Assembly: GCA_010909165.1 (NCBI GenBank)
Contig: MU008206.1
Location: 248,001 to 312,000 of the forward strand
Reading direction: 5' to 3'
From: Anthoceros angustus
Taxonomy: Eukaryota > Plantae > Anthocerotophyta
DNA length: 64,000 bases
Made by a program: the position numbers and the translations under genes
Notes under the pieces: model-generated
The model's input: only the letters and a program-made list of their open reading frames with translations
What the model was told of the DNA's origin: nothing
The model's database searches: none
Shown: positions 15,188 to 62,201 of the stretch, one piece after another
Position numbering within the stretch: the first letter of the stretch is position 1
How the letters are laid out: each line of letters begins with the position of its first letter

Positions 15188-16040
15188 GGGTGTCCGCACG
15201 CTTTGGTGGCACGCAGCATAGAAAAACTGGTTGTGTCATTTGGTCACATGGACCAGCCTCACGGTCACCGAATTCAAAATTACACACGGAAGGAACCTCA
15301 TGGAACATAAAAATGTGTGCTCCGCGTGTTTTCGCTCTTGTGAAGACCGGAACCGATCGTGCATAACCAAACGCTTGGACTTCGCCCATTGTCCGCTATC
15401 CCGTTGATGTCACCGTGGACACGGTGGGTCTTGCTTTGGGATGCATTCATGGCATATGTTCTTTGAATTGATGTGAAAAGCTTCGCTCCGCAGACGTACA
15501 TGCATTTGCACCGTGCAAATGCCTCGGAGAGGAGGCGTGGCGGGCGCGCTGCGCGTGGCAAGGTTTCCGGCATGGATTGTGCGGTGTATCGCCGATTGTG
15601 CAAGAATAGCCGACTTGTGATGGAAGTTTCTCAAGCTCGATTGGGGTGGTTACGCCCATGATGGCCCGCTCTCCTTGTAGTCAACGACGGTATTGGCTGA
15701 GAGGAAGCGTCTGCGGAGAGGCGAGCTTTGGCGTGTCGCGAGAAGCGCAAACAGGAATGAACCGGTGGACATAGTAGGCATCGGTGCGAAGAACATCGAC
15801 CTCCACCTCCACAAGCCGAAAGGCAGTGCGCTGCGCGCGATGCAACGCGTTATTTCAAGGTCGTTGGGGTTGATACTGCACAATCTCGCTACCGCCGTAA
15901 ACTAGCAAGGAGCTTGAGAGCAATTCTTGCGGATGACAAGTGAGTTCTCGCAATGTCGCCGTGAGATCTATAGTACTTTGAAGAGCTTCCTCTGAAGGAC
16001 TTTCGACTCCCTGCAATCGATCGAAAGATGAAGAGTTGTT

Positions 16041-16309
16041 TGATGAGAATCAATAGCTCTTAGATAGAAGAGAAACAATGGAATGAATTGATTAATGAGT
16101 AAAGTACAAGCCTTTAAATAGGCTGGGTGGTTGGTGGTTACAACAATATGTTGTTGTAACCATAAGTAGTTGCAACCATAAGTTGTTGCAACTATAAGTT
16201 GTTGTAACTAGTTGTTGTAACAACTAACTACCTAAAGCCCTAGCTCTAAATTAATGTTTAAGTAATGAGGCCCTAATGAATAGTGCCCTAAGCTAGACCT
16301 ATTTCATCA
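16041..16309 (-). repeat. 3' LTR of copia B
   Basis: By eye it differs from 23488-23758 only by two 1-bp indels. Confidence 0.95.
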
Positions 16310-16734
16310 CTCCCACTCACTATGAATGTAGGGGTGAATTCTAGCTTCAAAATGAGGTCTAAATCATAGATAGACTCCACTTAATCAAAAGTTATAAGCC
16401 TAAGAAAATGCACAACTTAAGCTGCTTGATGAATAAATAAGCCTGAAATAGAAAACTTAATATGTCCACCAAAATATTCACCGAATAAGGTTGAAAAATA
16501 ATAGCCTAAAATAGCTCCGAAATAGGCTTAAAAGAGGCCTAAAATAAAATAAATCAGGGGCCCGAAAATAAAAAGGCCCTTAAAAATACTTTAAATGGAT
16601 AAGCCAATACGGCTTATCCTAAATCGCCGCCCCGCCACGATTAATGGGCACAGGGGCAGACGGCGTTAAGGCCTTCCGCACCGCCGCGCACACGAGGCGG
16701 TGTCGGAGGATAGCCGTCATTGTCGGCTCTCCTC

Positions 16735-16865
16735 CTCCCGCGCATCGCGCCCGCTCGCGCCGCGCCTCGCCGCCGCATCGCGCCCGCTCGCCGCCGCCGC
16801 CGCCGCATCCGGCTCGTGGAGATCGCTCGCCGCCGCATCGCGCCCGCCGCGCATCGCGCCGCGCT
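16735..16865. repeat. GC-rich tandem repeats (CGCCGCCGCATCGCGCCCGCTCG-like) in the copia B 3' region
   Basis: About 5 degenerate copies of C(C/G)GCATC(G/C)-containing units. Confidence 0.75.
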
Positions 16866-17050
16866 TGGTGCTCCCTTTTGCCTGGTTTGTCCACATCTAA
16901 GCGCATAGCACTCGTGTGATATGCATGATGGCAGTGTCCTTGATGGAAAGTCTGAAAATTGCTGGCTTATTATATGTCCATAGTGTGTGCCACAAAGTTG
17001 GAGTGGAGACTATCTCGTGTTAATATATACGCTTGATAGTAGGTGAGTTC

Positions 17051-17122
17051 CATTTTGCATATTCTTCCATTTTCCTGTTTTCCATTTTCCATTTTCCATT
17101 TTCCATATCTTCCATTTTCCAT
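17051..17122. repeat. (CCATTTT)n heptamer microsatellite
   Basis: Degenerate run of TTTTCCA units. Confidence 0.8.
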
Positions 17123-18260
17123 GTCTTGGTCTCTAAGAAAAAAGGCCTAATGTGGTGGCAGGTCCTCTGCGGAGGAAGGCTCCCCCCATGCTCCAAAGGA
17201 CGAGGCCATAAAGAAAATGAAGAGAGCAAACCGAGTAGCAAGAAGAGAAGAAAACTTGCCGCACGTGGAGAAAAGGAAAAATTGAGCGGAAGCCTGCGCA
17301 TCTTGTGGTATAGAGATGCACTTGCACGGGTGAAGAGATCCCGATGTCGGGCCCGGCCGTAATATAGGAAATGATATGGAAGATCCTAATTTCGTGAATT
17401 CGCAAGCATGTGCCGAGGTGGCTAAACAGTGGAGAAAAGCCGATGGAGAAGATGACGCCTTGGTGGTACAAGCACCGGAAAAACCGATGTTGTCATCAAA
17501 GAAGTCGAGGGGCTGGTAAGCCAATAAAAATGCAAAATAAATTGCAATAAATAATTTGATTGCATAAAAATACTAATGATTGTTGATGTAGATAATCCAA
17601 CTACCGAGGGGCTGGAGCAGTATCCTCTGAGTGTCCCGGGTATGACGACTTCAACATAGAAGAAGAGTCGGAGGTCGGGGACTCCATAAACAGACGAGGC
17701 CCCAGTCAGATGTGAGGGCAGCCCAAGTGGAGAGCATATGCTAGCCGACATAGGAGAAGTAGGGGCTAGGGAAAAGAAAAGTGAGTAGGTGTAAAACCTA
17801 TAGTTAGGGGCTAGTAACTAGTGTAACCTATGCTAATAATAAGCTAATCTACATCTATTTTGCAGATGTGGAGAAAGGGTAGGCACAAGCCATGTGAGGT
17901 TTGCCCTACCTCTACAACCTATAACAAAACAAAAGGAAAATACCAAACTCCTATTTGCCACTGAAACCTATGCGAGCAACATACATGGTGCTTCCGGAGG
18001 AAAGGACGACCAGAAGTCCCCATGGAATATGTATGTGAGAAAAAGGGATAAAAATGATGTGGTTAGGTGCATATCCATGTGAAGAGTACGAAGGACACAC
18101 CAAGCACTTGTATAGTAAGTGACCTAACTTCGAATGACTAACTCAACACCATTTTTCTTCCCGTAACCCATGGAGTGTTTTGTAGGGTCCTTTTGGGCAT
18201 TAGAGAGAGAAGAGAAGGAGTACAGATGATTACTTGGAAATAGAAGAGGAAATAAACATG

Positions 18261-21200
18261 CTAGATAAACTTTGTGGATTGTAAAATTGGAAAATACCCA
18301 CTAGCTAGTGGCTTAACCTCTTGTACTCCTAACATTTTCATGTGTTTTAAATGCAAATCTCTTCCTAATGACTTGGTTAAAAGGTCAGCTGGGTTGTTTT
18401 GAGTTGGTATATAATTGATATCTATTGTTTTATTTTCTAACATTTCGTATGTAATGATACTCATCGCTATATGTTTAGTTCGAGTGGAAAAGGGGTTCCT
18501 AGCTAAGGCAATAGCCCCCTCATCAGAGAGAGGTGTAGGTCCATCTTGGGGATAATTCAACTCTCTCAATGCTAACCTACTCCGACTATATCCTTGGAGA
18601 CGAGGTGAGGACCCTATACTCGACTCATCGACAAAGCAATGGTTGGTTGTTTCTTACTTGACCATGAAATGGGTGCACCTCCTAGCGAATGCATAGCCGG
18701 ATCTGATTTGCGGCTATCGGGATCTCCAAGATAGTCGGCATCGATAAGTCGTTAATTGTAACTTAGATATGCCGGAACATGTTTATACATCAATCCTGTG
18801 CATAGTCCCTTTTAAATACCTGAATATTCTCTTGACACATTGCCAATGTTGTCGCCCGTGATTCTCAAAAATTGTGAGATCGCACTAACTTCAAAAGATA
18901 TATCGGGTCTTGTGAAGTTACTTAAATATATTAAGGTGCCAACAGATGTATGGTACACGACATTCGCTTTCTGCATCCGTTTTAGGGCTCATATCTCGTA
19001 AGCCTTGTGCCACTTGGAAATGGTGTGGCCGGCTTAGCATCTTCTAGTCCAAACTTCTTTAAGCTTTCTTTTATATATTTTGTTTGAACCAAGGAAATGG
19101 ATTTATTACCTCTATTTCTTATAATGTTAACGCCAAGGGCATAACTAAGGTCTCCTGTGTCATCATTTCATAATGACTTCTCAACCATGCTTTAATTTCA
19201 GCTAGATGGGAGAGTGAAGATGAAGCTAAAAATAAGTCATCCACATATAGTAAGAGGTAAATTGTGTACTGTTTAGTCTTCAGGATATACATGCTAGCAT
19301 CTGCTTTGCTTTGAACAAAACCATATTTTGTAAGCTTGTCATGTATATCATTATTCCATTCCTTGCCTGATTGCTTAAGGCCATAAATGCCTTTAATGAG
19401 CCTGCATACATGGTCTTCTTTACCTTTGACTTCATAGCCTTGTTGTCTCATGTATATTTCTTCTTGGATTCGCCATGCAGATAGGCGCTTTGACGTCCAT
19501 CATGTGAAGATGTAAGTCATGTTGAGCGGACAAGGCTATTATAATTCGAGGAGGCAAACTTTGCTCGGTGCATAGGTAGCCTGGTATGTAATCTAAACCC
19601 GGTATCTGGTAAACCCTCCGCTACCTTGCCTTATATCGCTCAATAGAACCATCACCCTTACGTTTGATTTTAAAGACCCATTTACTTCCCACTATTTTTC
19701 TCCCTTTGGGTGGTTTAACTAATTCCCATGTGGAGTTTTCTACTAAAGAGTTGTACTCAATCATCGCTACCTTCCATGTGTCTTTCTCGGAGAGGAAAAT
19801 GCTTGTTTCAAGGTTAGCGGTTCCTCTGGATCAACTGGCTTTGTAAACTTGATAATAAGGTGTGAGAGGAGAAATGGGGTCATCAAGTGACAAGATATCC
19901 CAAAGGTGGTTCCTTCCATCCAGCAGTCCTGCAATGGGGTCTAGTCCTAAGATTGTACCTTGGTGCGGGTTGTTGAATGTGTTCTTCAATGTCGACCACT
20001 TGTTGAGTGGTTCGTGTAACGCAGCTCTTGTTCGCTCGTCGTCGAATTCATCCACTTGCTCGCCGACGGCTCATCCTCAAAGGAATACGATCCTCCTCAC
20101 GAATTTCAACATCATAGTCGATTTCATCATCGGTTAAATGTTGAGGTTCTTCTAAATCGGGATCCGGAGTAGTTGGTCGTCTTGGAATATATTCTAACTC
20201 CTCCTCCTCCTCCGCAATGAGGTTCATCCATAGGAGCTTCTGCGGAGGGAGTGAATGAATGATGACAAAATCATCGTCATCAAAGTGGAAGGCTCGGATG
20301 CGCAGAGGAAGGAGCATCGGGAGTAATGGGAGCGATGCCCCCATAATAGGAGAAAGAATATGAGATTCATGAAAGGTCACGCTCCTAGCATAAATGAGCT
20401 TTCGGGTAGATGGGTCAAATAACTTGTAACCCTTAATGCCTTCGTGTAGCCAATAAAGGTATATTTGGCTGCCTTGGGATCCGACTTCTTGCGTTGTACT
20501 TTGGGGATGAACACATAGCGGGGATCCAAGATTCGTAAATGATCAATGAAGGTTTTCTCCGAAAAGCTTCATATGGAGTCATGCCTTGATCGGAAGTTGG
20601 CGGTCTATTAAGGAGATATGTTGTCAATATAGCTTCAATAACTTTTAGATAATGTAGCTTGGGTGAGCAAACACTGTGATCTCCGGAGGCGTAAATTTTG
20701 TTTTCGCTACATTTCTTTGAGGTGTGTACCACACTAAGTTGTTGCGCTATACCTTGGCAAATTCAGCAAATTCATTGAAGTGAACTCTCCTCCATTATCG
20801 GAGCGAAGAGTTTTAAGCTTCCGGTAAGTCTCTCGCCCACATCATATATTCTTTGAAGAAAGAAAAGGCGACTCTTATGGCGGAGGATGTAGGTGAGGAC
20901 AACCGGAATAATCATCGATGAAGGTTAAAAATATCTACAACCACTAAATGAAGGTGCGGATATCGGACCACAAATGTCTGTGAACCAACTCTAAGGGTGC
21001 CTAGCCCTCCGAGGGATGGATTGTGGAATGGAGCTTGATGACGTTTGGTTATGACGCAAGCTTCACACGAGAGAGGTTCAAGTTTAGGAATACAGGAGTT
21101 CTATCGTTTCCTTAGACATTTGGATAAGCTTTTGGCTATTCGGATGACCTAATCGACAGTGCCAAAGCATGGTGCTTGAAGAGTGGAATGGGAGGCTACA

Positions 21201-22907
21201 TTGATGAGGTGTAACGGACCCACTTGACCGAGAGTTTATAGAGTCCATCTTCTAGTGTGCAGGCAGTTGTGTGATACTTATTAGTATGATAGTAAAGGAG
21301 ACACAAATCGGCTTCAAGGATAATTTGCATGTTATGTTCTTGACATAAACTAGCGGTGACACTAGATTCTTGCACATGGAGGGTACATAAAGGACATGGG
21401 AGAGAGTAAGAACCTGCCCGGTGGAGCACTTTAATGCCACGGAACCTACACCAAATATGGTGAGGTTATGGTCGTCGCCTAGGAGCACTGTTTGTTGTCC
21501 TTTTGATGGCGAATACGACTCAAAAAAGTTAAGGTCGTGACATATATGAGATGTTGCACCACTGTCTAAATACCAATTTTGGTTTGATGGCTTGGAACTT
21601 GCCAAGCAGACAGTGAGTGCTGATGGAGTTGCCGTGGAGGGCTTCTTCTTAACGGCAACATGTGCTCCTGTGGTGACCTCCTTCTTTGGCTCACCATTTT
21701 TCTTCTTCCAACAATCCTTCTCCATATGGTTGGTCATCTTGCACCAATTGCAGGTAACTCCAGCCTTCTTCATGCCTTTTGAAGGTTTAAATGAAGAAGT
21801 GGATGGTCCTTGAAAATTTTGAGTAGGAGTCGGTCTAGGAGTGAAGTTTCCGCCTCGGCCACGTCCTCTTCCTCCGCCCCGTACATTACTTGCGCGGGCT
21901 GATCGGGATTTTCATTTCGACGGCTTGCGTCCTCCTCAATAAGTGCTCCAATTAATTCACTTACCGATATCCGGTTGTGGAGCCGTTAATTTCTTCTTTT
22001 GTGCAGCTCTAAGGACCGCATTTTGCGTTGTCACAAAGGGCCTATAGGAGGGCAAGTGGCGAGGAGAGCAATAAAAGTTTGTTTCTCCGTAAGTTTTCTT
22101 GAGGATGCATTGAAAATTATTCTTGCACACGGAAGTTGCTCAAGTGTTGTTGTAAGGAATCGCCTCCTTCATCCTTATAGTATATAAGTGACGTGTGGCG
22201 TCAATAAGCTCATTCCATCTTTGGAGGCATAAGTCGAGCTAACTTCTCCCACATCTCTACCGGTGTTTGCGTCGCAACTTGGAGTACCATCGCTCGTAAG
22301 TCCGTTCATTAAAACGCGTCTGCCTCCGATCTTTGGCTTCCCATTCATCTATAGCATCGAGTCCCAAGTGGAACATTCTTCCGCACTGCTGACAATATTC
22401 CATAAGTCGCGTCACAGACACCTTGGGCACGTGTTGCCATACACGTACCCTTGCCGTTGAATCTATCTTTGTCTTTAAAGTTGTCACCTTGAATCACTTG
22501 AGGCTTGGATTCATTACGCTTTTTAGCTTTCTCCTTTTCTTCCCTTTTAAATTGCTCCCATTCATCTCGCCATATAGATTGTTGTTCTTCAAGCCATTTG
22601 GTCTTTTGGGCGGCCAAAAATTTTGCTCTGGCTGCGCCGAAGTCATCAATATCCACGTCGAGATCGTCCGACCCCACCATTGCAAGTAATTTTAATGATG
22701 CAGGTTATGCCGTGGTTGACACGCCGTCTTCTTGCATTGTTTTGCAGGAAAGAGGCGCGAGCAGGCACAACATTTCTTCAAATTATGAATTTCTGCATCA
22801 TAATCAGAATCTGCAGACTTACAATCAAGTGAGAAGAGACCTTGTGAAAGGTCTCGGTCAACAAGTCTATCAGTGATAATATTGATTTGTTGTGTATTGT
22901 AAGTCAA
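18261..22907 (-). pseudogene. Copia B gag-pol (frameshifted as assembled)
   Basis: KDKDRFNG, zinc knuckle CNWCKMTNHMEKDC, protease WYLDSGATSHIC, YLLNRPPT..TPYE, IYGLKQSGKEW, LLYVDDL, RTKHI...NPADLLTKSL. Confidence 0.93.
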
Positions 22908-23475
22908 TTTCTCATTGATAGCAGAGTGATTTATTCTAAGTTCTGCTCTAATGGAATCAAGAGATTGCTGCAGATGATCCGGATTAGGAGCGAAGATACT
23001 AGCCTTATTTTTATGTACTTAGAGATGGCGGACTCTATAGCACTATATTGATAAAGGCTAAATGTAGAAAGGAGAGCTTTACGAGCATAAATGATATCTT
23101 GTACTCTATCTCGACTTAGACAAAGGGCTTCAATGAGACAACATACTTGTGCCTCTAAAACATCAATCGAGGAGAATTGAGGTCAAACTCCTCGAATGTA
23201 AGAAGATTTGATTTGATGTTGTTTCTTCTTCTTGGAAGCCTTGATCTTCCTCCTAAATTCTTGTCTGCTAGGATTAAAGGAATCCATGGAGGGCAGACAA
23301 GAAATTGATGCACAATGTGTGCATCATTGTGCGCTGGTCACCAGATGATTGCTGCTAAAGGCGAAATCTCCACGCTGCATTATCTTCATTTGAAGTACTA
23401 CAAACGCAAAAGCATTGGAGAGTAAATTGCCTAGAGCATAAGGAAGCAGAGGTGCTCAAGCACAAAGAGCTATAT

Positions 23476-23487
23476 GCTCTGATACCA
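23476..23487 (-). promoter_or_regulatory. Primer-binding site (tRNA-iMet) of copia B
   Basis: Minus-strand TGGTATCAGAGC directly follows the 5' LTR. Confidence 0.95.
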
Positions 23488-23758
23488 TGATGAGAATCAA
23501 TAGCTCTTAGATAGAAGAGAAACAATGGAATGAATTGATTAATGAGTAAAGTACAAGCCTTTAAATAGGCTGGGTGGTTGGGTGGTTACAACAATATGTT
23601 GTTGTAACCATAAGTAGTTGCAACCATAAGTTGTTGCAACTATAAGTTGTTGTAACTATGTTGTTGTAACAACTAACTACCTAAAGCCCTAGCTCTAAAT
23701 TAATGTTTAAGTAATGAGGCCCTAATGAATAGTGCCCTAAGCTAGACCTATTTCATCA
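23488..23758 (-). repeat. 5' LTR of copia B
   Basis: Direct repeat of 16041-16309, adjacent to the PBS. Confidence 0.95.
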
Positions 23759-24339
23759 TCATCGCTTCTCATGAGGAATATGAGCACAAAGATGTAAGAA
23801 TTTGAAGGATGTTCAGTCGATCACCGCGAGCCGTAAATACGCCTGAATATCATTTTGTCGCCTCTGGATGACCATCCGATTCCCACATCGCCAAGCACAT
23901 TGGTGTGAGTCGAGCATCCGATCTGCAGCGAAATTGCGGTGGGAAGGATTGTCGGGGCCAAGGTATGTGGTGCGGTCCGGAAGGAAGCTTAGGTCCGATG
24001 TGATCTCGGATGATGTGAAAGCCGGCGTACGCAGTGCAGGAGCTCGCCTCGACCTTCCTCCAACACAAGGACACCAAGCGCCTACGTCGGACCAAACACT
24101 TTTGACCAGCACATCATCCACTTCTTGGATACTTCACGGTGAGATGAATATCTTTGGATTCCATGCTTGTGTTGTGAGTGCGAACCTTCATCCGTGCCCT
24201 CACCTTCCATGCTTGTTTGTACTTCACGCATGCGTTATATGTTAGCACTACCTTCCAAATTCGTGTTTGACTCTTGGGCATGATGGTATTGGGGTCGAAG
24301 GGTGTTCACGTAGGCTTCTCGTATGCATACCGGTGTTGT

Positions 24340-24670
24340 GATTTAGGGACCGGTGATATGGGGTGGATGATTGGTGTTGAGCGAAGGGCTATGTGATGCC
24401 TGTATGGCCTTGTGATGGTTTGGGCTGATTGGTGATGTTGATTCCGCACTGGTTATGTTTTGGGCAAGGCGGGTTCCCAGTTTGGTGTGGGGAGGACGGT
24501 GTTGTGATTTAGGGACCGGTGATATGGGGTGGATGATTGGTGTTGAGCGAAGGGCTATGTGATGCCTGTATGGCCTTGTGATGGTTTGGGCTGATTGGTG
24601 ATGTTGATTCCTGACTGGTTATGTTTTGGGCAAGGCGGGTTCCCAGTTTGGTGTGGGGAGGACGGGGTGT
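24340..24670. repeat. Tandem duplication of about 168 bp in the transposase intron
   Basis: GATTTAGGGACCGGTGATATGGGG...GTGTGGGGAGGACGG occurs twice. Confidence 0.85.
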
Positions 24671-25356
24671 TGTGGTTGCCGCTTGCGTATTGGGGTGGTC
24701 GCCCGGTGATTTTAGTGGACGTGGATGATGTGGACACCGGTGATGTGGTGGTCCGCTATCTTGTTGATTGATGCGTTGGTGATGTGGATGATGGCATGGT
24801 GATAAGGTGGACGGATTGGTGATGTCATGGAGTAGGTGGAGCTGCTTTGCAGCCCTTAGTGATGTGGTGGATGTGTTGGTGTTGTGGATGATGGAATGGT
24901 GATCACACGGTTTGGTGATGTTTTGGAGTTGTTCCATTTTAGTTGGCATCACTTGGTGACCTCGTGTCCGTCGTTGGAAGTGTGTTGCACGTTTTGATAT
25001 TGGCCATCCCATCGGTGATACCACCACTCGCAGGAGTGTATGTAATGAAATCGCTCGTGATGTGTGCGATGCAATTCTACTGCGGTTCGCGAAGAGCATC
25101 CCGACATTTCAATTGGGCAGCGAACTTTTGAGAAATTGAAGCCGTATTTTGTGAAGAGCTGCAGAACGGAACTTGTCTTTATTCTTGGTATCATGTGGAA
25201 ATGGCCTTTCTCAAGGACGCTTTCAATGCTATGCGCGTTGTCTTTCAAGTGTGCATCGGAGGTCAATGTCGCTGTCCATGTGACATATGTGCTCCCCAAG
25301 AAGGTGACGGGCTTGTTCAAGAGTGTAGTGCAACACATGTGTTGTATCCGTCAGGA

Positions 25357-45523: not shown

Positions 45524-45551
<28 letters not shown>
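45524..45551. repeat. (CT)14 microsatellite
   Basis: Direct reading. Confidence 0.95.
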
Positions 45552-45556
<5 letters not shown>

Positions 45557-48238: not shown

Positions 48239-49408
48239 GGGTCCAAGCACGGTTAGGTAGACCACATTATGTGGGGACGGACGCAACGTGTAAATATGTC
48301 CACATGTGGACATATTTACCTTGCAAAAACTCTTCTCGCTAGAATAATGATCGAAGTGATTCAAGTTTTTTCCCCAAAACTAAGAGCATGGCAACAAGTC
48401 CACATTAAAATGCCCAGAGTTTAAGGATATGATTTGTGCATTTGGTATTTAATTATTTGATCATGGATGGACAAGTGAGCTTTGGATACAAAAAGTGAGC
48501 ATAAGACACACAACCCAAGCTCATTTGAATTTCAAACGCAAACCGTCAAGTGAACATGTAACACTAAAAGTGAGTCTTTGTCACAATCAAGTTGGAACTT
48601 GTTCAAATTTCAAAGTTGGAATAAGCGGAATTTCAAAGTTGGACCATGGCAATTTCAAGAGCAATCACAAGTGAACATGGAACACGAAAGTGAAGCATGG
48701 TCACAAACAAGTGTAAACTTGTTTGTATTCAAAGTTTTGTCTAAGCGGATTTTCAAAAGATGGTGCACCCAAGTTGAAAAGACATCTCCAATGAGAGCAT
48801 AACCGCCATCTTCACGCCTGCGAGACCTTTCACTAGCTCGCTGCGCTTAAGGCGCCTGATGTCTGTGTGTGAACCATGTGCGGAGCTGAGAGGAGGAGAG
48901 GAAGGGAGCCCCGTCGGAGCAGTTAGAATTGAATGGCTCCAGCGCCTCCCTCCGGGTGCACTTAGGAGAGCAAAACACGCACTGAAGCGTGGAGGAAAAG
49001 CAAATTCGAGTTGCATCTTTGCGTGTGGAAGATGGAGCATCTTTGTGCGTAGCGGATGTTAGGCAAGAGGGAGCAACAAGGTGGAGGAGGATTGTCACGG
49101 TGATAATCATACGGCGGAGGGTGGGTGGGAGGCCCAGGATCCAAGAACCCTTCAATGAGTGAGGAGGGAACTAGTCTACGAGGGCAACAAGACCAGTCCT
49201 CTTTCATCCACAGAGCACAAGGCGCCTGCATGGAAAAGGGGGCGGATCTCACCCAGTCGATGGGGCCGTGATGCACAATGTGGGCGTATTGCTCGAGAAC
49301 TTGGCTACGCTGCATGTAGAACTGCCCACTTCAATTCGATAGCAAGGCTAAGGTGTTAGATGCTTTTTCCAGCTCGCGGGGCCTCAAGGAATTCTTCCTG
49401 CTGCAGGG

Positions 49409-51500: not shown

Positions 51501-52940
51501 TGACTCTAAGGCCTCAATTGTACATATGCCAAACCTGAAATTGAAATGACCTTGATGAACTTGTAAATACCATGGTTTGGTTGCACAAGATGTGGCCATA
51601 TTCACACGCTGTGATGTCCCGCTCCACTCCGCTTGGGATCTGGAGCACTTTGATTGACTTGCGACCTTGCGGGTGACAATGTCCAACTTAAGCGCCTTTT
51701 TAAAACCCCATCTCGTGGAAGACCTTGGAAGAGCCCAAGATTGATGCAAGTGAGCCATGGCCACGACGCCAAAAGTGGTGTCGGCCGCAGGCCGGTGTTG
51801 CCGCTAATGGTGTTGCTGGCGGCGCGGGGCGGGTGTCGGTGCGATGGCGGTAGCGGTGTCGGCAATGGCGGATGCAGAGGGTAGGCGGAGACCATTCATG
51901 GCTCGGGCAGCCTACTGGGCAAGTGTCCGGGAAGACTTGCGTAGTCGTTTGGTGGTGATGCGGCAACCGCAGATCCGGGAGGCGCAACTGATGCCGGAAA
52001 GGGTCGCCACGGCCAGCGAGGCGTCGGTGATCACGTGCGTCGGTGGCCCACCAGACGATGAGGCTGAGGATACACAATCAGTGAAGTCAAGCTAGTCTCT
52101 AAGAAGGGACCAAGAAAAGGGCCATCTAGTGTTTGGGAGAAGTTCGTTATTTCCTAGCCCATGTTTGTTCTTGCGTGTTTAGGCGTGGTGTGTGTTGGAA
52201 GGAAGGCTCTCCTGTACATGCGGAGGCGCTATTGTTTCAATTGAAGCACTTCAAAATTGTCCAAAGATTCTATCAAGTATGTCAAGCTGTGTCTTTCTAG
52301 TCTCTCCATTGTCCTATTGTCTAGCCACCTATAGTTCAGCGTTTGACATGTGCCTCTAGGGCTTCCTCTAGCGTGGCCTGATCAGAGGGCTTACCCAATA
52401 CTTGGGCTTGTCCTTCTTGTTGTGGGGATCCAAATGTCCCGCCCAAAGATCTCGACTTTGGCCTGAAGACGCAACGCACGTTAGGGCAGGCCCAAGCTTC
52501 CCTTATTCGTGGTTGCATAGCCCGGCCCTACTTCCACATAATAATTACCTTCAACAACCTCGCCTTTGCGAATTGGGCGACCTTCCAAAACTTGTCTCAT
52601 GCCGTTCTCGAGCCTCAACACCTCGACACACCTGAGGAGGTAGAATTTAACGTTCTCTGCATTGCCTGGCTCCACACGTACCATATAGTTGTCTCCAGGC
52701 TCCAACTCTCGCACTCTCGGGGACAAGTGACTAGTCTTCGGTCTTGATGAATGCTTCAGTTTGGTCATCTTTGGAGCCTTCCGCTTCATGCCCCTACTCC
52801 CAGAGCGGGTCCCCATCCCCTCAGCAGCCTCACTATTATCATGTTGCACCAAACCTGTGCCCACCCCACTCACATTTCCAGCCTCAGACAGTTCAGGCGA
52901 CACCTCCACCCTAGCCTGCTCCACCTGACATGTGTCCTAG

Positions 52941-55900
52941 TGTGGGCTACGGACTTCCCTTGGGGGTTAGGAAATAAGTGGGGTTTTGTTTTTTTCGTAG
53001 GTCCGAAGAATAAAATAAGGCGGAAAAGGAGGAATAAGCGGACGGTGCTCGGAGTATACTCCGACCGTGAGGGTAACGACCGCACCACTACGACAAGCTA
53101 CGACCGCGACCGGTATCGGATAAGTCCGGACCCCACCCGGTCAAAACAGATAAGTACGCCTGTGAAAGTAATTTAGAAGTTGAGTCGTGAGGATGCATCG
53201 AGCGCGCCACGTGGACGGCCCCGAGTGGAGGTCGGCATGCAGCAGACCGAGGCTTGGGGGCCGTTATAAGGTATTCACGCCCCGATCGCGCGCGCAAGGC
53301 TGCAGTACGCGCGTAAGGTCGAGTAAGCCATGCACCGCGCTACGGATGTGAAGAGGCACCTCCCGCCGCCGTTACCCCGCGGCCGACGAGGAGGGTCATT
53401 TCTCCGGCGACCGAGACACCGCAGCCTCGCGCCCGCAACCCGCCTCCGCGCTATCTTCGAACGCCAGCATCTGCTGCTCACCGCTGGGGTTGGAGCAACA
53501 AGAGGGCGATCGTGCCGATCTCGCACCGCCCGGCCAAGAAAGGAGAAGAAGGCGATGGGACCAAGAAGGTCATGGAGGTATGGGAGCCATGGAACCCGGT
53601 AGAGCGCAACATTGTAACCCGCGCTATCCGGACTTTGGGCCATGGAGGAGGCGGAGGATTAGTCAAGAGTGGCACTTAGACGTGTTCCAGTCAGTTCGAC
53701 GCTTGACGTTGTCACCGTCCGGAGTTCGCCGGAAGATGTTGGCGGCCAACAAGGAGGTTCGTCCAAGAACCTCCGGAGGATCCTGTGAGATGGACCTTGA
53801 GGTCCCGAGGGCGGCTTACAACCGCCCAACGGAGGAGGTTGGGGCGAGTCCCGAGCCCCTCAAGGCGAGGGAAAGATAGAGGCGCAAGGCGCGGCGTCAA
53901 GCTAACGCAGACAACCAACTACCGGTTGATGCCTGACCGCCGGATGTAAGGGTGAGGGCGAGTCGGATCATTGTCCATCGAACTTGCTCACCAAGGTGGA
54001 TCACCTTGGTGATAATTTGTTGGTGTTCTGCATGCGTTGCGGCGGGCAAGAGGGCGACTGGGAAGGATCATCTTCGCCAGTTCACCAGAGGCCCAAGCCG
54101 AGGAGCGAGAAGCCACTGCTGACTATCCCCATACCGATCCATGTATGGGGACACACGACCTCAAGGATGGGGAGGTAGAGCGGCGCCCGGAAAGGGTTGG
54201 CGGCCCTACTGAAGGTGAGGCAAGGCGCCTGAGGTAGAGGCCCGACCCCTAGGGCCAAACGGGTCCGGAGGAGGACGATCGAAGGGATACTGACTCCATA
54301 CGTCTGAACGGACCCCTCACCACCTAGGGAAGTGTGGAAGATATCCCCGCTTCCTCCTCTGGTGCCTCGAGCACCAAGGCAGCAGAGACGGCCCGACCCA
54401 ACACCCACCACCACAACGGCAGGAGCCCCGACGAACTCGCCGGGCAATCAAGAGGCGAAGACGGTGCCACCCGCCAACGCAGCACTGGGTGCTCAGGTTT
54501 TGCCCCGCCCACGGAGTGGCAAGAGGTCAAGAGGCGTGAGAAGGGCGTAAAGGGACGCCAAGGAGCAGGAGGTCACCGCAAGAACCCCACTGAGCCGGTC
54601 CTGTCGCCGACCGGGAGAGGCAAGGGGCCGCCTCGAACCCCCTCACCCTCCGAGCCCTGTGACGAAGAGGCGAATAAGGAATCATGCCAAGAGGGCCAAG
54701 GAGGGTGAAGCTCCTGACTCGCAATCAGACCTAAGGGACCCGATTAGGTCCGAGAACCCCACCGACTCCCGATCAGATGGAGGTCCTGGCGACCGTGAGA
54801 TGCCCGCCTCCCACTACGGACTTTTGGGGCCTCACTGGCGGCCGTGGAAGAGACACGGCGGTCCTGCCACCGCCATGGATTCAGATGCTGGGGTCTCTGG
54901 GACAGAGAAGACCTGTGAAGTGGAAGCCACAAGGAGGCGATGGTGCTCCTCCGAGGGAGCAATTGGAGGCGCCCAGAGGCGAGGAGGAAGGCGAAGCTCT
55001 CGGCCGCATCAAGAAGGGAAACGGGAGGCCGAAGGGAAGTCCGTCCATTCGACAGACGACTAAATTCCTTCACCGGGTGAGCACAAGCAGCATGGAGGCC
55101 CAAGCGCTGGTCAAGACCTGCAGTGGAGAGGGGTAGCGCAGAGAGGAGGAGGCCGCAGCAGAAGGCTCGCGACTGGCCGAGGCACCGACCAGACTAAGTC
55201 GGGCCTGTGAAGGCGGCGAGGAGGCGAGGAGGCGTCAAGACCGACCGCGATCACTATCGGCGTGATCGAACCGGTGGAGGGAGACAGGATAGGCTAACTC
55301 AAGACGGAGCAGGAGGCGAGCAAAGGGCCACCATGCCGAGGAGAAGGAAGCCCGCGACAAGGAGATGGAGGATCTCCTGACTCGCCAGAGGTGGAGCAAT
55401 GCAGGAGATGGAAGACCGCAAGAGACTCGAGCCGCAGCCCAAGTTACCATTGAGGAATGGTATCTGCAGGCGTGATCACGATCACGAACGAGATAGAGCG
55501 GCTCCACTGCTGGGACGGAGGAGGTAAGGCGATGGAACAAGGAGCGTGACGCCGAAATGGAGAAGGACTCGACGGCAAACGGGCAGAGTTGCCCGACCGT
55601 CTGAGAGGGAGATGGCGAGCTAAAGGCCGTGATGAACGGGAGCGAGAGCACCGGACGCAAAAGAAGCCGGTCCGCTAAGGAAGGCGGAAGGGAGCGCCGC
55701 GCTATGGCGGTAAGCCAGCAGAGCGAAACGACGGAGCCGGAGCAAAGTGAGCAACAACAGTGTGAGGTGACCGAGGCCCTTGTGGCCTCGCGAGATTCGG
55801 CCCGCCCACCACGAACTGGCAGGAGATGGTCCAAGAAGCCGGACAAGACGCCTCCGAGCACCAATGGCGAAGGAGTATCGGTGCTCCGGCACATGTGGAA

Positions 55901-57312
55901 GAGGCAATCCAAAGAATTGACTCGGATTTTGCCTACTACCACGCCGAGCTCCTTAAGGCATTGAAGCCTCTCCGCCATAAATGGACGGACCCCAAGGCTC
56001 AAGGGATGAAGGGCATGGGGACAAGACGGACCCTAGTGGCCTGCTTGGAGACGACGGCAATGGGGAGAAGAGCCTCAGAGGAGCAGGACGCGCCAATACA
56101 ACGGACCTCGTGGTAAGTCCACCGCAACCCGCCGGGAGGATAGAGGCGGGGCCCCGAAGGCTGGAAGGAAGCCAACCCACCCAAGACAAGGGCCTGGGTA
56201 GGGATGAGGGCCTAGCAAGAAGAGGTCCGAGATAAGGGGTCCGAGCTTGGGGACCGGACCGAGAATAACCGACCGAGGTCCGAACCCTGAGATGAGACCG
56301 ACTCGACTCAGAAATAAGGCACTCAAGTTCAGACTCGGAGTCGAGACCGACCCCGAGGTCCGACTCGAAGCAAGGAGGAGTCCCTCCGACTTACGCCGGG
56401 GAGCAGCCACTGGTCTACCGGGAGGGACCCACCGGGGCTGGGGAAGACGTTGTGGTAACGGCCGCCGCCGCCAGCCCAACCCGATGTGATTCCGGAAGAG
56501 GAAGGGTCCGCCTCGCGGATCATCCGATTGCGCGCCGCAATGCCGTGACGGAGATTGGACCACCAATACCGAGACGGAACCTGTGACCTTCCCAGCCCAC
56601 CGACGAAGGAGATAGGAGGAGGAATAGGATGGTAGGCGGCCGACATGCATCGAAATGGCCACCACCGTAATAGGGTGTAATAAAGACGCCGACTTGGGCG
56701 TAGTATAAGAGGGCCGAGGCTCAATAAATCATCTTCTCTTGGTGTTGATCTGCGTTTCTTGCAGACCTTGTGTGTCTTCATGCTAACGTGAGTCCCGAGT
56801 CATCGAAAGGTGCACGGCTACCCGAGAGATCGATCAAGGTCCCGTGACGGACCCTAGCGTGTGGTGGTGTGCAGGAGAGCGATCGGGGACCGTGTTCGCC
56901 GCAGAGCAGCCGCCCAAGATCGAGCGGACTGAACGAGCCGGAGGAACTCCGGAGGCAGAGTCGGACGAGAGGCCCGCTGAGCAACGGAGGAGGTCCGGAC
57001 GTAGCCACTATGCTCTTTTCCAAGGTTGATGAGCGAGGAGAGTGATGAGAGGAACGGACTAAAGGAACGAGTGACGTATGGAACGATACGACGCAAACGG
57101 GTCTTAAACGCTTGGCCACACCGGCCTCGTGAACGTTATGAGTAGTTAGACGAAACGACGATTGCGTGTGTTAAAGTTGAGCTGGACGCAAAGTAAGGTG
57201 AGAATCCGAAACGCGGCAAACGGAGCTTATCATTCTCTCGGGAACGGACTCCTTACTACAACGACACGGGATTGTGCGCGCCCGGCTGGCCGTCAGCGAA
57301 AGTCGCGCCACA
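52941..57312 (+). mobile_element. Giant solo-LTR-like unit, copy 2 (4372 bp)
   Basis: 5-bp TSD CCTAG at 52936-52940 and 57313-57317. Termini are TGTGG...CCACA. TATAAGA is at 56704-56710 and AATAAA at 56723-56728. It is homologous to 630-5285. Confidence 0.87.
53330..56116 (+). pseudogene. Frameshifted long ORF inside solo-LTR copy 2
   Basis: RAQHCNPRYPDFGP, KMLAANKEV, MDLEVPRAAYNRP, AKRAKEGEAPDSQSDLRDPIRSENP, HVEEAIQRIDSDFAYYHAELLKALKPL. Confidence 0.65.
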
Positions 57313-57317
57313 CCTAG

Positions 57318-57715
57318 TCCACTTCAGGTCCATCATGCTTCGCCTCATGAGATGTGTCCTCATTCTCCACCTCATGTGTGTCCCTGTCCACCTCAAGTGG
57401 GGCCTTCTCAACCTCAAGTGTGTCATTCTCCACCTCATGTGTGGCCTTTGTTTGGTTAGGTGTGGCCTTCTCTACCTGATGCCCCTCCATGTCCACCTCA
57501 AGCGTGTCCTTGTCCACCTCTAGTGTGGCCTTCTCAACTTGAGCTATGTCATTCTCCACCTCATGTGTGGCACTTTTCTGCCTAGGTGTGGCCTTCACCT
57601 CAGGTAGCTCCCTGTCCACCTCAAGTGTGTCCTTGTCCACCTCAAATGTGGCATTCTCCACTATAAGTGTGGCCTTTTCCCGCTCAGGTGTGGCCTCCTT
57701 CACCTCAAATGTGGC
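57318..57715 (-). repeat. Coding 21-bp minisatellite (7-aa acidic repeat EVEKATL/EVDKDTL)
   Basis: CCACCTCAAGTGTG(T/G)CCTT-type units. ORF 57314-57703 translates them in frame. Confidence 0.85.
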
Positions 57716-58760
57716 GGCTCATTCTCCACCTCCTCATTGGGCGTCGCTTCCTCAAGTGTGGGCGTTGTTGCAAAGTTGTCCAAAACTTCTGCATCAGGTA
57801 AAAAGTCATCAAGTGCTTGGGATTGGATGTCATCCACTAAGCCGCCAACCACGTCATCACCTCCATGAACCTCCTGATCTGCCTCCCCCCACACTGCACC
57901 TCGTTCCACAGCCACTGGGTCTTCCTTTGATCCGGCTCCTGTGTGGGTGTCATCAACCTGCAGCAATTCCATTGTTGCAACCTTCTCGAGGCCTACACCA
58001 GATTGACCCCCTTGCATTGGAGCCGTTTTTTCCACCGAGGGCGGGGTCCAAGCACCCCCCTCTGTGCCCTGACTCGGCACGCCAAAAACTGAGCTGTAAG
58101 AGCCGCCGCCAAGGGTGGCAAACAGAGTGGCCGTGTTCCGAATGGGAACACGGCGACTAGCACTTGTCACCGACGGCAGCTTTTCATAGCAAGCTGCAGA
58201 AAAAACATGATGATAGCATTAGACTTGGAGGGAAAGCAACACAGGTGCAAAGGGAGAACCCTATTCCTCGGCACACACCCCTCTGCACACACTTGGAGAT
58301 GCTGCTGCCCGCATGTCCTGGCGGTGGCTACGGCGGATCTTCTCAAGGCGGGAGAGCAATGCATTCGGATCCTTTACACCATCAAGGTACTCGATTTCCA
58401 CTCCTTGAGGTACCGCGCCTCGGTATTGTTCCTGGAAGGTCCCAACCTTTTGCGACATACCACCGGGTGTCCACATCCATGCTGCAGTCTTCCAGGGCAC
58501 ATGTCTTGTTGGTCTGCAAATGGGAAAAAAGGAAAAATTCATGGTACATATGCCCGCACGAGAGCAAAACCTGCTCATTGCAGCCAAACCACCTGCAATG
58601 ACACGCACTCAATGAGAAACAAGGTAGACACTAGTTCCAGACAAGAAAACAGATCCGCACAGTACACCGAAAGAATACCTTGCGCATATAGGGCAAGCAT
58701 TCACAGCAATTGTTGGCCCGGTCGTCCGCTCCAATGGCGCTGGAAGGAAGTTGGTGCGAC

Positions 58761-59400
58761 TGATCAAATACATTAGGGTTAGGGCACTATTCATTAGGGC
58801 ACCATTCATGGGGCACCATAACTTAAACATTATTATCTACCTAGGGCATTGCGTAGTTAGTAGTTAGTAGTTAGTAGTTAGTAGTTAGTAGTTAGTAGTT
58901 AGTAGTTAGTAGTTAGTAGTTAGTAGTTAGTAGTTAGTAGTTAGTAGTTAGTAGTTAGTAGTTAGTAGTTAGTAGTTAGTAGTTAGTAGTTAGTAGTTGG
59001 TAGTTAGTAGTTAGTAGTTAGTGGTTAGTAGTTGGTAGTTAGTGGTTAGTAGTTAGTAGTTGGTAGTTAGTAGTTAGTAGTTAGTGGTTAGTAGTGAGTA
59101 GTTAGTAGTTAGTAGTTAGTAGTTAGTAGTTAGTAGTTAGTAGTTAGTAGTTAGTAGTTAGTAGTTAGTAGTTAGTAGTTAGTAGTTAGTAGTTAGTAGT
59201 TATAGGAGTTATAACTACTTAGCGGTTATCTGGCTTATAGTTGTAACCGCCTAACCTCCTAACCATCTCGCCTATAAATAGGCTTTGTACTTTGTATTAT
59301 ATTCATTACATACAACTCTTTTGTGCAAAAGCTTTTCTACTATTTGCTTGCTATGTTTTGCTACCTAGAGCAGCTATGATTCTCATCATGGTATCAAAGC
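58761..59400 (+). mobile_element. Lone copia LTR (58761-59388) plus PBS (59389-59400), related to the copia B LTR
   Basis: TGATCA...TCATCA ends. It shares TAGGGCACTATTCATTAGGGC, ACTTAAACATTA, TTGTACTTT and GATTCTCATCA with the reverse complement of LTR B. TATAAATA is at 59273, and the LTR is followed by TGGTATCAAAGC. Confidence 0.88.
58853..59202. repeat. (GTAGTTA)n heptamer array, about 50 copies, inside the LTR U3
   Basis: 350 bp of near-perfect 7-mers with a few A>G variants. Confidence 0.97.
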
Positions 59401-59899
59401 ACCCTTCCACTTCAACATCCATGAGGATGTTGAACATCCGCTCCTTCCGGTTGACAACGCAAGCCTGCTGCTGAAGCTCATGTTGAGCGCGGCAGTCCTC
59501 TGTCGCTAACTCCTCAACCCGAAGGTACAGGCTTTTCTCCAGAGTGTACAAGGCTTGAAGCTCGCCCGAAAGGTGGCTGATCAGGGATCTGTGCCCTTGA
59601 ATGTCGTCAAAAGTCTTATCCTCATCAATGCTCTTCTGCACCATCTCCATTTCTTGAGAACACTTGCGGATGTCGAACGCCACCTGCCCAAGTCTCTGTT
59701 TTTCACCAGTCAATGCTTGCTTCATCTCCTTTGCAGTGGCATCCACCTTGTCAAGTTGCAGATTCACATCTGTCAACTCCCCAGCGATACGGATCAAGTG
59801 GTCACTGAGGATGGTAGCCACCTTGCTCTTCCTTCGCGTGCTGCCCTCACCTGATCATTACCAGTAAGTTACCCATTCACCCTTCCAGTGGAACATTAT

Positions 59900-60220
59900 T
59901 GCATGCAAAGTGGCATTGTGCCTCCAGGTAGAACCAATATGCAGGAAAAGTGGCCTTGGGCATGTGGAAGTGGAAGATGCATACGAGTAAATGACCAGGG
60001 TGCAACGCACATGTGGCAGAGTGGACCAGAATTGTAGGCAAAGTGGCATTGTGCACACAGGTGGAACAAATGTGCAGGAAAAATGACATTGGGCACAGGA
60101 AGTTGAAGATGCATACGAGCAAATGACGGTGCGGCACATGTGGCAGAGTGGACCAGAATTGCAGGCAAAGTGGCCTTGTACACACAGGTGGAACAAACTG
60201 CAGATAAATTGACATTGGGC
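59900..60220. repeat. Tandem duplication of about 130 bp in a probable intron of the accessory gene
   Basis: GAAGATGCATACGAG..CACATGTGGCAGAGTGGACCAGAATTG..AAAGTGGC recurs at about 127-132 bp spacing. Confidence 0.8.
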
Positions 60221-62201
60221 ACACCAAGCGGATGAGAAACAAACAGCACATGACTAGGGTGCGACGCACATGTCGCTCAACAACCAGGCCTGAGTTACTT
60301 ACCAAGATAAGCTAGTGCATGGTGCACTTCACATGAGCCTACACTATGTCAAAATAGGTTGACTGACAAGGAGGGCCATCCTGGGTGCTCCTTAGAGGAT
60401 ACTAGGTAGTCTAGAGGGACTTAGCGACCAGGCATGCGAAACAGAAGATAAATCAGGCATGTTAGACAACCTTGGAGAGACAAAATAAAAACAAGCACAT
60501 CCTACCATGAGGTGTCTGCTGCTCATGTCTGTGGGCTTCCCTACAATGAGTAGGGGCTCTTCCTCCTTGATTCTGAGCCTCCACCGCCTCGCTTTCCCTC
60601 AGATTTCGCTTTTTTATTCCTTCCGGATTGGGTCTTCTCGTGAAACACCCTCCGCTTCACCTCGACACGACAAGTTTCTCCAACAGAATCCCAAGGGCCA
60701 TAAGCCTAGGGACCGCTTCTCCCCAAGATGGGCCTCAACTCGTACATGCCATAAACAAGAACATCAATTTCCTCCATTCTTCTTATTTGAGGCAGCAATA
60801 CCCGCCAACCATGCCCTCGTTAAACTGGGGCCAAAAGCTTCTCCACCTCCTCATTCCCCAACATTTCCCTCGGTCCATTTGCAAGCCCCAAGTCTTTGAC
60901 ATCCACCCCAACACACGCCATCAGTAGCCTTCCATGTCCATCTTGCCATGGGCTCTTTCGCTTCTGCCCATATTCCCTCCAGAAGCGCTCTCTTTGCTGC
61001 TGCTCGGCACTCCTTCCCTTTCCGGCTCCGCTTTTCCGCTGCCCTACTTTTGGATTCCAAGGATCTACCACTTCGGTGCTTGGGCACCTCAGGTGAGGTC
61101 ACTTCCACCTCACCTCCAGTCTCGTCACTGTCACCAGATGAGTGCCCAGAGCTCCCCTCCTGAGTGTGGTCTTCCACATCTCTGTCCTTAGATGAATTCC
61201 CTCTGCACACACAATTCAAAGGAAGGACCACTGTTAAGTTAAATGGAAAGCATGGTTAGGCAGACAGCGAGCACCATCCACATCTACAGCATGAAAAGCA
61301 CTCTGAGCACTGCCTCGAGCTGGCCAGGTTGGTTAGTAAGGTCCGTGAGAGTGACTAGAATCAGGTTTGCCTCTCGCCTCGGCGCAACTAAAAGCAGGCT
61401 CAGATAAATGCCAAGCATCTGGGGGCATGCCAAGATCAAGTCCCCATCGCGACGGCTGCCCCTTGTCCTCCGCCATCCAGCTCTCTGTCAGGGCGAGGCC
61501 CATGTCCAGCCCCAAACCACAACTGGGCTCAAGGAGGGCTCCATGCCGGGTCTCGGGACATGAGCTTAGAGGTGCCTCCACCTTGGGCGTAAGAGGCCTT
61601 GCACTTGACGATCACCACCTCACCCAATCGCACCCTTAACTTTCCAAACATGCAATCATACACGGGGCCGTGGCATCACGGCTCAGCTCCTAGGTGGGCA
61701 TTTCTCTGGGCACAATCTTTGTCGAGGCGGTCATGGCGGCAAGCAAGCCCCGAACCCCGGCAATTGCAGCTCAGCGACTCGCACTCGCAGTTGGTGGCTC
61801 GAACTTGGCTGTCCTCCCGGCCTGGCCCGATCTCCCTTCCGCGCTGCTCCTCTAGCAAGTAGGGACCTCATTGTGGTTGAGTGGGCACCCTCCTCCCCTT
61901 CCTCCTGAACACTCCAAATGGCGATGGTGTCAAGCAGCGCCTCAGAGCTCCCGCGTCGGCTTCGCCCACACCTTCACGCCCGAGCCGCAGTTTCGGCCCC
62001 AAGTTCACATGACATGTTCACGCTCGAGCCCAGATTTTCCTGGTTCAAGTTCGTATTGTACGACATGTTCACGTTCCAAATTTGACTTAACTTCAAACTA
62101 TATAAATATTGGATAACCGAAACTCGCCGTATATGCAGCACATAGTGCACATTTGCATATGTCACAAAATGTGCTATACCTAACCGTGCCTACACCCAGG
62201 A

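Follow-up and report, generated by a model that had tools for sequence, protein, structure and literature searches.

We analysed a stretch of 64,000 nucleotides from Anthoceros angustus (Anthocerotophyta; assembly GCA_010909165.1, contig MU008206.1, positions 248,001 to 312,000 of the forward strand), here called the window, whose own numbering is used throughout. Its central part holds two elements that we read as diverged, inactive copies of one plant family of Sola2-type cut-and-paste transposons. In this family a transposase gene converges with a second, accessory gene, which encodes a coiled-coil protein with a RING-H2 finger and a putative role as an E3 ubiquitin ligase. For this reading as a whole, the proposed ligase role included, we estimate a probability of about 0.72. 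Element 1 extends from 15188 to 34572 and element 2 from 48239 to 62197. An earlier note, made from the letters of the sequence without database searches, had described GGG-starting inverted termini and exact 4-bp target duplications for both elements, and we could confirm these: ATTC lies on either side of element 1 and AGGA on either side of element 2.

The inverted termini of both elements have the form GGGT....GCAYGGTTAGGT. At the left end of element 1 (15184-15214, plus strand) the duplication ATTC at 15184-15187 is followed from 15188 by the terminus GGGTGTCCGCACGCTTTGGTGG, while at its right end (34546-34576, minus strand) the terminus reaches to 34572, reads GGGTGTGAGCATGGTTAGGTGACC as its reverse complement and is followed by ATTC at 34573-34576. 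Likewise, the left end of element 2 (48235-48265, plus strand) consists of AGGA at 48235-48238 and the terminus GGGTCCAAGCACGGTTAGGTAGACC from 48239, and its right end (62171-62201, minus strand) of a terminus up to 62197 that reads GGGTGTAGGCACGGTTAGGTATAGC, followed by AGGA at 62198-62201. The common core of these ends was expressed as the pattern GGGTNNNNGCANGGTTAGGT, which at zero to two mismatches finds exactly these four ends in the window. With up to three mismatches allowed, the pattern gave seven matches, a number that none of 100 shuffled sequences reached (mean 1.46 matches).

At the DNA level the similarity between the two elements is almost nil; their protein blocks are collinear and lie on the same strand. 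On the plus strand both carry VMDFSQNYAF.VQNEIQSMHWH (expect value, E, 1e-17), KFYHFYI.DD and, as the best block, DGA..F.ACRPSYFVARYPSLTGGC.MLWS.FG.GHGKGEHDGAGA, which is 73% identical over 117 amino acids (aa; E 1e-55). These collinear blocks substantiate the earlier proposal of a plus-strand transposase with three Asp motifs in both elements. On the minus strand the similarity comprises an N-terminal block, VPR..ALG.L.EK (E 0.002), the RING (41% over 56 aa, E 3e-16) and a beta-rich domain (32% over 78 aa, E 7e-6), and it also held true that the two accessory genes are alike as protein only. When nested insertions are subtracted, the elements measure about 9.6 kb and 10.4 kb. All four genes, two for the transposase and two for the accessory protein, are broken by stop codons and frameshifts, and both window copies are inactive pseudogene copies. 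All searches were run piecewise on the gene fragments as they stand, and in Pfam none of the window pieces of the elements reached a curated cut-off.

Loci were fetched for relatives of the transposase and later also of the accessory protein (L001 to L007). A transposase with a convergent gene for the N-terminal block, the coiled coil and the RING-H2 finger is present in L001, L005, L006 and L007, which come from three other public assemblies (L006 from the same one as L001, European Nucleotide Archive assembly ERZ26858887, and L007 from another). L001 is a complete element of 12.4 kb with perfect 22-bp inverted repeats, GGGTATATGCATGAATAGGTGG, that follow the terminus consensus of the window. 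It encodes an intact transposase of 568 aa and, converging on it, an open reading frame (ORF) of 547 aa in which a conserved N-terminal domain is followed by a coiled coil and, at the C-terminus, by a RING-H2 finger. L006 and L007 repeat this layout, and in L006 a terminus of the same consensus lies 220 bp upstream of the accessory gene. In L005, which represents a third lineage, pieces for the N-block/coiled coil and for the RING converge on the transposase; the terminal pattern found no termini in this locus. The sequence of L002 ends 7 kb downstream and shows only a weak RING-like match, and L004 ends too early for the layout to be seen.

A protein search with the L001 accessory protein returned 14 homologues, four of which are gene models of Adiantum nelumboides, and all three homologues for which DNA was at hand adjoin a transposase. 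A word-index protein search with the RING ORF of element 1 gave no matches, and relatives were found only from the intact L001 protein. Several "hypothetical proteins" of A. nelumboides, namely MCO5581382.1 (P0065), P0273, P0279, P0281 and P0282, are chimeric models assembled from exons of the Sola2-like transposase or of the accessory gene, and some of them span 14-111 kb of the genome.

In both window elements the accessory gene starts near the terminus opposite the transposase, and the two genes are convergent. Its N-terminal block in element 1, VPRFVALGFLIEKKLGKRVNW (33146-33397, minus strand), was aligned by hhalign with its counterpart in the L001-type profile (E 0.008). Also on the minus strand lie the RING-H2 finger at 31707-31874 (Pfam zf-RING_2 E 0.0015, which is below the curated cut-off; hhalign E 0.004) and a C-terminal beta-barrel domain at 29716-30318. 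All eight ligands of this finger are in place, the last pair is spaced C-x4-C, and W..AKGW follows. Element 2 carries, likewise on the minus strand, the N-terminal block EAVPRLMALGILLEK (60660-60734), which ends at a stop codon, a probable coiled coil assigned from composition only (59354-59854), a RING-H2 remnant in which two of the eight ligands are lost (58442-58609; profile E 0.026, hhalign E 0.0016), an acidic/basic linker (57317-58218) that includes 21-nt coding repeats at 57337-57740, and the C-terminal beta-barrel (BAH-like) domain (52484-52936; profile E 8e-8). The same module order had been proposed for both accessory genes. It stood for the N-terminal block, the RING and the beta-rich domain; the coiled coil is not recognisable in element 1, and in element 2 its composition makes it plausible. 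A tandem array of about 25 units of 14 nt (58769-59286) separates the coiled-coil piece of element 2 from its RING piece and possibly sits in an intron. The accessory barrel domain of element 1 is truncated, and a small tandem duplication (29318-29596 and 29594-29866) lies directly at this end.

The window-type accessory genes were compared to the intact genes of the L001 type by profile methods. In hhalign, the N-block and the RINGs of the window aligned collinearly to the corresponding L001-type positions with E values of 0.002-0.008, while reversed-sequence controls gave 0.05 or more; for the coiled-coil region, the window pieces gave no sequence signal against the L001-type profile in the same program. 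A profile of the L001 type, made without the rows of the window and of L005, detected the RING of L005 at E 0.0013 and that of element 2 at the E value of 0.026 given above, among 5344 six-frame pieces. For the coiled-coil region, this search likewise found no signal between the lineages. Window and L001 types share the block V..[RK]..A.GFL.E...G..VNW, the C-x4-C spacing of the last pair, the position and the orientation. We infer from these similarities, and partly from position and order, that both types of accessory gene have a common origin.

The finger itself follows the C3H2C3 pattern C-x2-C-x11-16-C-x-H-x2-H-x2-C-x10-C-x4-C in element 1, L001, L006, L007 and the database homologues, and ligands have been lost in element 2 and L005. 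When the accessory profile was compared to the sequences of the PDB, it matched RLIM with an E value of 9.6e-5, as well as RNF165, RNF38, Arkadia, RNF13 and synoviolin, with many RING-H2 E3 ligases at E<0.01. An AlphaFold (AF2) model of the L001 accessory protein reached a mean predicted local distance difference test score (pLDDT) of 77, with values above 90 for the N-domain and the helices and about 78 for the RING. The model consists of a helical N-domain, long paired helices of about 130 residues (the coiled coil) and a small RING. Foldseek aligned it to coiled-coil arms and to the RINGs of RNF12 (template modelling score, TM, 0.63) and HRD1 (TM 0.70; both target-normalised), with root-mean-square deviations of 2.0-2.4. 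Profile matches and predicted fold both suggest an affinity of the finger to the RING-H2 type. Its best sequence and fold matches, RLIM/RNF12, RNF165/Arkadia and RNF38, also carry their RING-H2 at the C-terminus. The likeness to these ligases is limited to the finger of about 50 residues, whose last ligand pair is C-x2-C in RLIM-type ligases and C-x4-C here, and the N-domain and coiled coil of the accessory protein have no counterpart in them. RING-H2 fingers are usually E3 ubiquitin ligases; ubiquitin ligation, anti-silencing and turnover of the transposase, which the earlier note had suggested, are putative roles of the accessory protein.

The most informative new result concerns the beta-rich end of the accessory protein, which by profile comparison is paralogous to the domain at the C-terminus of the transposase. 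A profile made from transposase C-termini only, without rows from the window, detected the accessory pieces of element 1 (E 7e-16) and of element 2, the latter with the value already given, and in a tblastn search the domain of element 1 matched the transposase C-terminus of L001 with an E value of 3e-11. The shared domain was modelled as a beta-barrel with flanking helices at a pLDDT of 93. The top Foldseek matches of the barrel are the BAH domains of AIPP3, polybromo, EBS, SHL, MET1 and DNMT1, with Plus3, KOW-like and SH3 barrels also among the matches, and from its predicted fold we tentatively call the domain BAH-like.

In the sister lineages, other modules are found at this place. In L001, L006 and L007 the RING gene is followed on its own strand by a NIF/FCP1-like domain (Pfam NIF, 38.2 bits against a cut-off of 21.8; L001 11901-13133, minus strand; L006 12253-13617, plus strand; L007 3329-4555, plus strand), and the Adiantum gene models P0281 and P0282 join accessory and NIF parts. 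The catalytic NIF motif DxDx(T/V) is not kept. It reads D-M-N-G-V in L001, L006 and L007 and D-I-N-G-V in Adiantum, with the second Asp replaced, and this altered form is conserved among copies that are about 40% identical, which points to a pseudo-phosphatase or a changed mechanism. In L005 a Pre-SET/SET gene of SUV39 type (11784-12890, minus strand) lies between transposase and RING gene, and we take it to be inside the element. The NHSC motif of this SET gene reads NHGY, and the region appears partly decayed. Since the NIF-like domain and the SET gene occupy the position that the transposase-like barrel has in the window, this slot appears to be filled in sister lineages by other modules related to chromatin or transcription.

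Gene 1 of the element thus encodes a DDD transposase (named for its three catalytic Asp residues) with a Cys-rich N-terminus, an RNase-H-like core and the C-terminal beta-barrel, and gene 2 a protein in which a helical N-domain and a long coiled coil precede the RING-H2 finger, itself followed by a linker of charged repeats and by the module at the C-terminus. On this basis the following mechanism can be proposed. The accessory protein would probably be a dimeric, element-encoded E3 ubiquitin ligase, which its BAH-like domain may recruit to chromatin or to a partner shared with the transposase. Its substrate at that site might be a histone, the transposase or a host factor of chromatin or silencing, and the modification would favour expression or transposition. 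Because the sister lineages carry NIF/FCP1-like and SET modules, host chromatin or transcription would be a likelier target than turnover of the transposase, and these alternative modules together with the fast evolution of the accessory protein make us lean towards a host-directed role. A wider version of this proposal, which we put forward as doubtful, is that a Sola2 lineage widespread in ferns and relatives carries a modular E3 ligase, in which a fixed platform of N-domain, coiled coil and RING-H2 is combined with a swappable C-terminal module and serves as a counter-silencing or targeting factor against the host. The modules exchanged would then be the copy of the BAH-like reader, the NIF/FCP1-like pseudo-phosphatase and the SET methyltransferase, a list that we hold just as tentatively. 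The accessory protein evolves about four times faster than the transposase, which would fit an arms race of this kind.

Several observations weigh against a conserved two-gene Sola2 family with a ligase of its own. Both window copies are pseudogenes, hence nothing in the window shows activity. The C-x4-C spacing of the last Cys pair is unusual for RING-H2, and no Pfam RING model reaches its curated cut-off. Accessory proteins of the window type and the L001 type have only a marginal similarity (E 0.002-0.03), which is confined to the RING and a block of 20 residues. The fold match of the shared domain to BAH is weak, with probabilities of 0.9-0.99 but E values of 0.07-0.5 and TM scores of 0.36-0.43, and its sequence gave no Pfam BAH match and no match to PDB sequences at E≤1. 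Locus L003, from a Klebsormidium-like lineage, has no RING gene within 10 kb downstream, and the assignment to Sola2 rests on a comparison of motifs by eye.

The main rival to the ligase reading is that the second gene encodes a non-catalytic partner of the transposase, comparable to the Myb-like ORF of PIF/Harbinger or to TnpA of CACTA, in which the N-domain or the beta-barrel binds the element ends or the transposase and the RING is only a zinc-stabilised interaction module. The second proteins of two-gene DNA transposons such as PIF/Harbinger and CACTA usually bind DNA or act in nuclear import, the domain common to both proteins here could mediate heterotypic assembly, and the finger is atypical in its last Cys pair and its sub-threshold Pfam scores. 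However, its best profile matches are bona fide RING-H2 E3 ligases, its predicted fold fits the RINGs of RNF12 and HRD1, and its C3H2C3 ligands are conserved across lineages, so that we consider a purely structural partner unlikely and retain the E3 ligase as the preferred function.

The transposase is best preserved in element 1. An N-terminal conserved block (..HIIHFLDTS..) lies at 23957-24166 and the catalytic core at 25360-27888, both on the plus strand. The core is frameshifted and present as a tandem duplicate, 25360-26658 and 26656-27888, whose halves of 1.28 kb are 87% identical. Its first Asp motif is found at 25717-25785 and again at 26948-27058, and the motifs WSDGAASQFK and GHGKGEHDG both lie within 25935-26462. 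A decayed C-terminal beta-barrel (BAH-like) domain follows at 27699-28091 (plus strand; transposase C-terminus profile, E 0.018). In element 2, remnants of the transposase extend over 49352-51213 (plus strand) and were recognised by the protein blocks shared with element 1, comprising the N-terminal block (49727-49828), VMDFSQNYAF (50169-50300), a degenerate second Asp segment together with GHGKGEHDG (50488-50823) and the start of the C-terminal domain, LLELGDNFVV (51125-51157).

A search of 1.8 billion representative proteins with the best preserved piece of the element 1 core, 25935-26462, gave 662 relatives at E≤1e-3. Those with names belong to the fern Adiantum nelumboides, the charophyte Klebsormidium, the conifer Cryptomeria, a nemertean and molluscs, and in Pfam no family covers the transposase or its relatives. 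The window, P0007 and L001 share the motifs VMDF[SA][QE]NY, WSDGAASQFK and GHGKGEHDG with spacings of about 81-83 and 41-42 aa. The published Sola2_DFa-2 has LMDFKEN, WSDGAKHFK and YHGKSDVD at spacings of about 84 and 43 residues, and Sola2_PPa-1 has LCDFKEN, WCDNARHFK and YHGKSECD (PMC3627910, supplement). Compared by eye, the motifs of the window and of these two transposases have the same order and nearly equal spacing. Sola2 elements duplicate 4 bp of their target (PMC3627910), and Sola elements do likewise (PMC10741241). Such a duplication flanks both window elements, and the flanks of L001, TCCA and TTCA, agree at three of four positions. All termini examined begin with GGG, which fits the G-R-G start that is typical of Sola2 termini. 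The DFa-2 element begins with GAG (PMC3627910).

Because motifs, spacing, 4-bp duplication and G-R-G ends match published Sola2 elements, we call the transposase Sola2-like, an identification with good though not formal support that upholds the earlier one. It could instead belong to another or undescribed DDD/E superfamily that shares short motifs, and the lack of a Pfam family and the classification by eye would allow for this. We regard such an origin as very unlikely: the three motifs occur in the order and with nearly the spacing of two published Sola2 transposases, duplication and ends fit Sola2, and relatives come from molluscs and conifers, two groups with annotated Sola2 elements (PMC10294476; 10.64898/2026.07.23.736688). 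With the Sola2-like assignment retained, two further statements of the earlier note need qualification. It had placed Sola2 mainly outside plants, a view that is outdated, as a list of plant transposons includes Sola with its 4-bp duplications, exemplified by the moss Physcomitrella (PMC10741241), a "Sola" entry stands in the repeat table of the fern Ceratopteris (PMC6890710) and Sola2 is the most abundant superfamily of DNA transposons in the conifer Cupressus (10.64898/2026.07.23.736688). It had also taken Sola2 to be mainly transposase-only, whereas dictyostelid Sola2 elements with a second gene, Fanzor1, are already known (PMC3627910).

These dictyostelid elements, from Dictyostelium fasciculatum and Polysphondylium pallidum (PMC3627910), are among the closest comparisons. 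They resemble the family described here in the motifs [MC]DF.[EQ]N, W[SC]D[GN]A..FK and HGK...D, in the 4-bp duplication, in short imperfect inverted repeats of G-R-G type, in a large size of about 10-15 kb and in that some of them carry a second gene. In contrast, their second gene is the TnpB-like Fanzor1 and not a coiled-coil RING-H2 protein, and their target sites are AT-rich, unlike those of the family here, which differs further by the C-terminal beta-barrel of its transposase and the duplication of this domain onto the accessory protein.

In a quick tree, 93 core segments are split into an animal and a streptophyte clade (Shimodaira-Hasegawa-like approximate likelihood ratio test, SH-aLRT, 98). 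The window copies are sisters of each other (99), and together with the L001 group and L005 they belong to one streptophyte clade of 57 rows (95), outside of which lie the clades of Klebsormidium/L003 and Cryptomeria. All RING-bearing lineages are inside the 57-row clade, and the tree, though thinly sampled, fits a single early acquisition of the accessory gene. In the animal clade, the protein P0106, from a Logan contig, is a transposase relative of 982 aa fused to a C-terminal OTU-like cysteine protease (Pfam E 4e-5), and this fusion to a deubiquitinase fold is a further tie of the transposase family to the ubiquitin system.

For the accessory gene, a ratio of nonsynonymous to synonymous substitution rates (dN/dS) below one had been set beforehand as a test. 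Estimated by the Nei-Gojobori method from the three intact elements, the ratio ranges from 0.05 to 0.18 in the transposase and from 0.24 to 0.28 in the accessory ORFs, with dS saturated in most pairs, and the intact accessory ORFs are under purifying selection. L001 and L007 have transposases that are 81% identical, accessory proteins that are 46% identical and NIF proteins that are 47% identical, a discordance that could stem either from fast evolution of the accessory strand or from recombination between lineages. The lineages that share position and orientation of the RING gene have transposases just 40-48% identical. These data support the RING gene as a long-standing component of the element and not a chance neighbour, and the earlier view that it is old and no recent capture is borne out by the recurrence of the layout in L001, L005, L006 and L007 and by the dN/dS values. 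Plant DNA transposons often capture host fragments, and the variable NIF and SET cargo shows that capture occurs in this group, but it is hardly probable that the RING gene is a functionless, transduplicated host fragment (a Pack-type capture) shared through one captured ancestor, given the same gene, place and orientation next to such divergent transposases, full-length intact ORFs with a dN/dS of about 0.25, a neighbouring transposase in all three homologues with DNA, and protein searches with the element 1 RING ORF and the L001 protein that returned no host-type homologue.

The family can also be compared to other transposons with a dedicated second protein. In PIF/Harbinger (transposase and Myb-like ORF), CACTA/En-Spm (TnpD and TnpA) and MuDR (MURA and MURB), the second protein is likewise co-inherited inside the inverted repeats, and the two genes of MuDR are convergent as well. 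These superfamilies are unrelated, differ in termini and target duplications, and have no RING finger among their second proteins. A candidate functional analogue is VANC of the Arabidopsis VANDAL elements, an element-encoded protein that acts on the chromatin state of its own element; it is a sequence-specific DNA-binding hypomethylation factor without RING and has no sequence relation to the accessory protein. To our knowledge, very few DNA transposons encode a protein aimed at the protein-modification or chromatin machinery of the host, with VANC as the chief example from plants.

That transposons capture chromatin domains is generally known (10.1101/2021.11.30.470311). Transposable elements with such modules, among them chromoviruses with chromodomains and fusions with PHD, SNF2 or SET (10.1101/2021.11.30.470311), are alike in linking a chromatin-type module to the transposition machinery, and by analogy the BAH-like barrel and the SET gene may plausibly serve targeting or counter-silencing. 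Those elements usually have the module as a fusion to their integrase or transposase, whereas here a paralogous copy is also present on a separate RING protein and the slot accepts NIF-like and SET modules. In the literature searched, with Repbase outside its scope, neither a RING-H2 accessory gene nor a duplication of the barrel domain was found described for Sola2. If our reading is true, a conserved and selected RING-H2 gene in Sola2 would be a new type of transposon accessory function and would offer a concrete way to study how DNA transposons survive in fern and gymnosperm genomes, which are very large and under heavy silencing. Gene models like the "hypothetical proteins" of Adiantum found here belong to transposons and should be masked.

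Both elements contain insertions that do not belong to the family. Element 1 carries a nested copia retrotransposon at 16041-23758 (minus strand) with long terminal repeats (LTRs) at 16041-16309 and 23488-23758. The insertion is young, with LTRs of 270 bp that are 99% identical. It includes an RVT_2 match at 19122-19499 and an integrase SH3 match, both on the minus strand, and a matching 5-bp target duplication was sought at its ends and not found. In element 2, an LTR-like insertion of 4372 bp with TG..CA ends and the 5-bp target duplication CCTAG (52941-57312, no strand assigned) splits the accessory gene. When it is removed, the charged-repeat piece and the C-terminal domain piece share one frame with one TAG in between. 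An inverted relative of this insertion, 73-75% identical, lies at 624-5289 in the window. The two are copies of a GC-rich repeat of 4.4-4.7 kb without coding signal, probably a solo LTR or a non-autonomous LTR element. The copy at 624-5289 had been a candidate for a third accessory gene and was rejected, as it matches 52937-57318 at the DNA level and in all frames and has the TG..CA ends and a 5-bp duplication.

The surroundings of the two elements are of copia origin. Both are inserted in copia pol genes, with copia matches (gag-pre-integrase, rve, SH3_retrovirus) beside each of them, including 34621-36938 on the minus and 45990-47281 on the plus strand, and the stretch between the elements (34573-48238) is unrelated copia sequence. 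Element 1 is bracketed by a pair of direct repeats of 180 bp (13101-13277 and 39086-39268) that are 95% identical and may be the LTRs of the copia element into which it was inserted.

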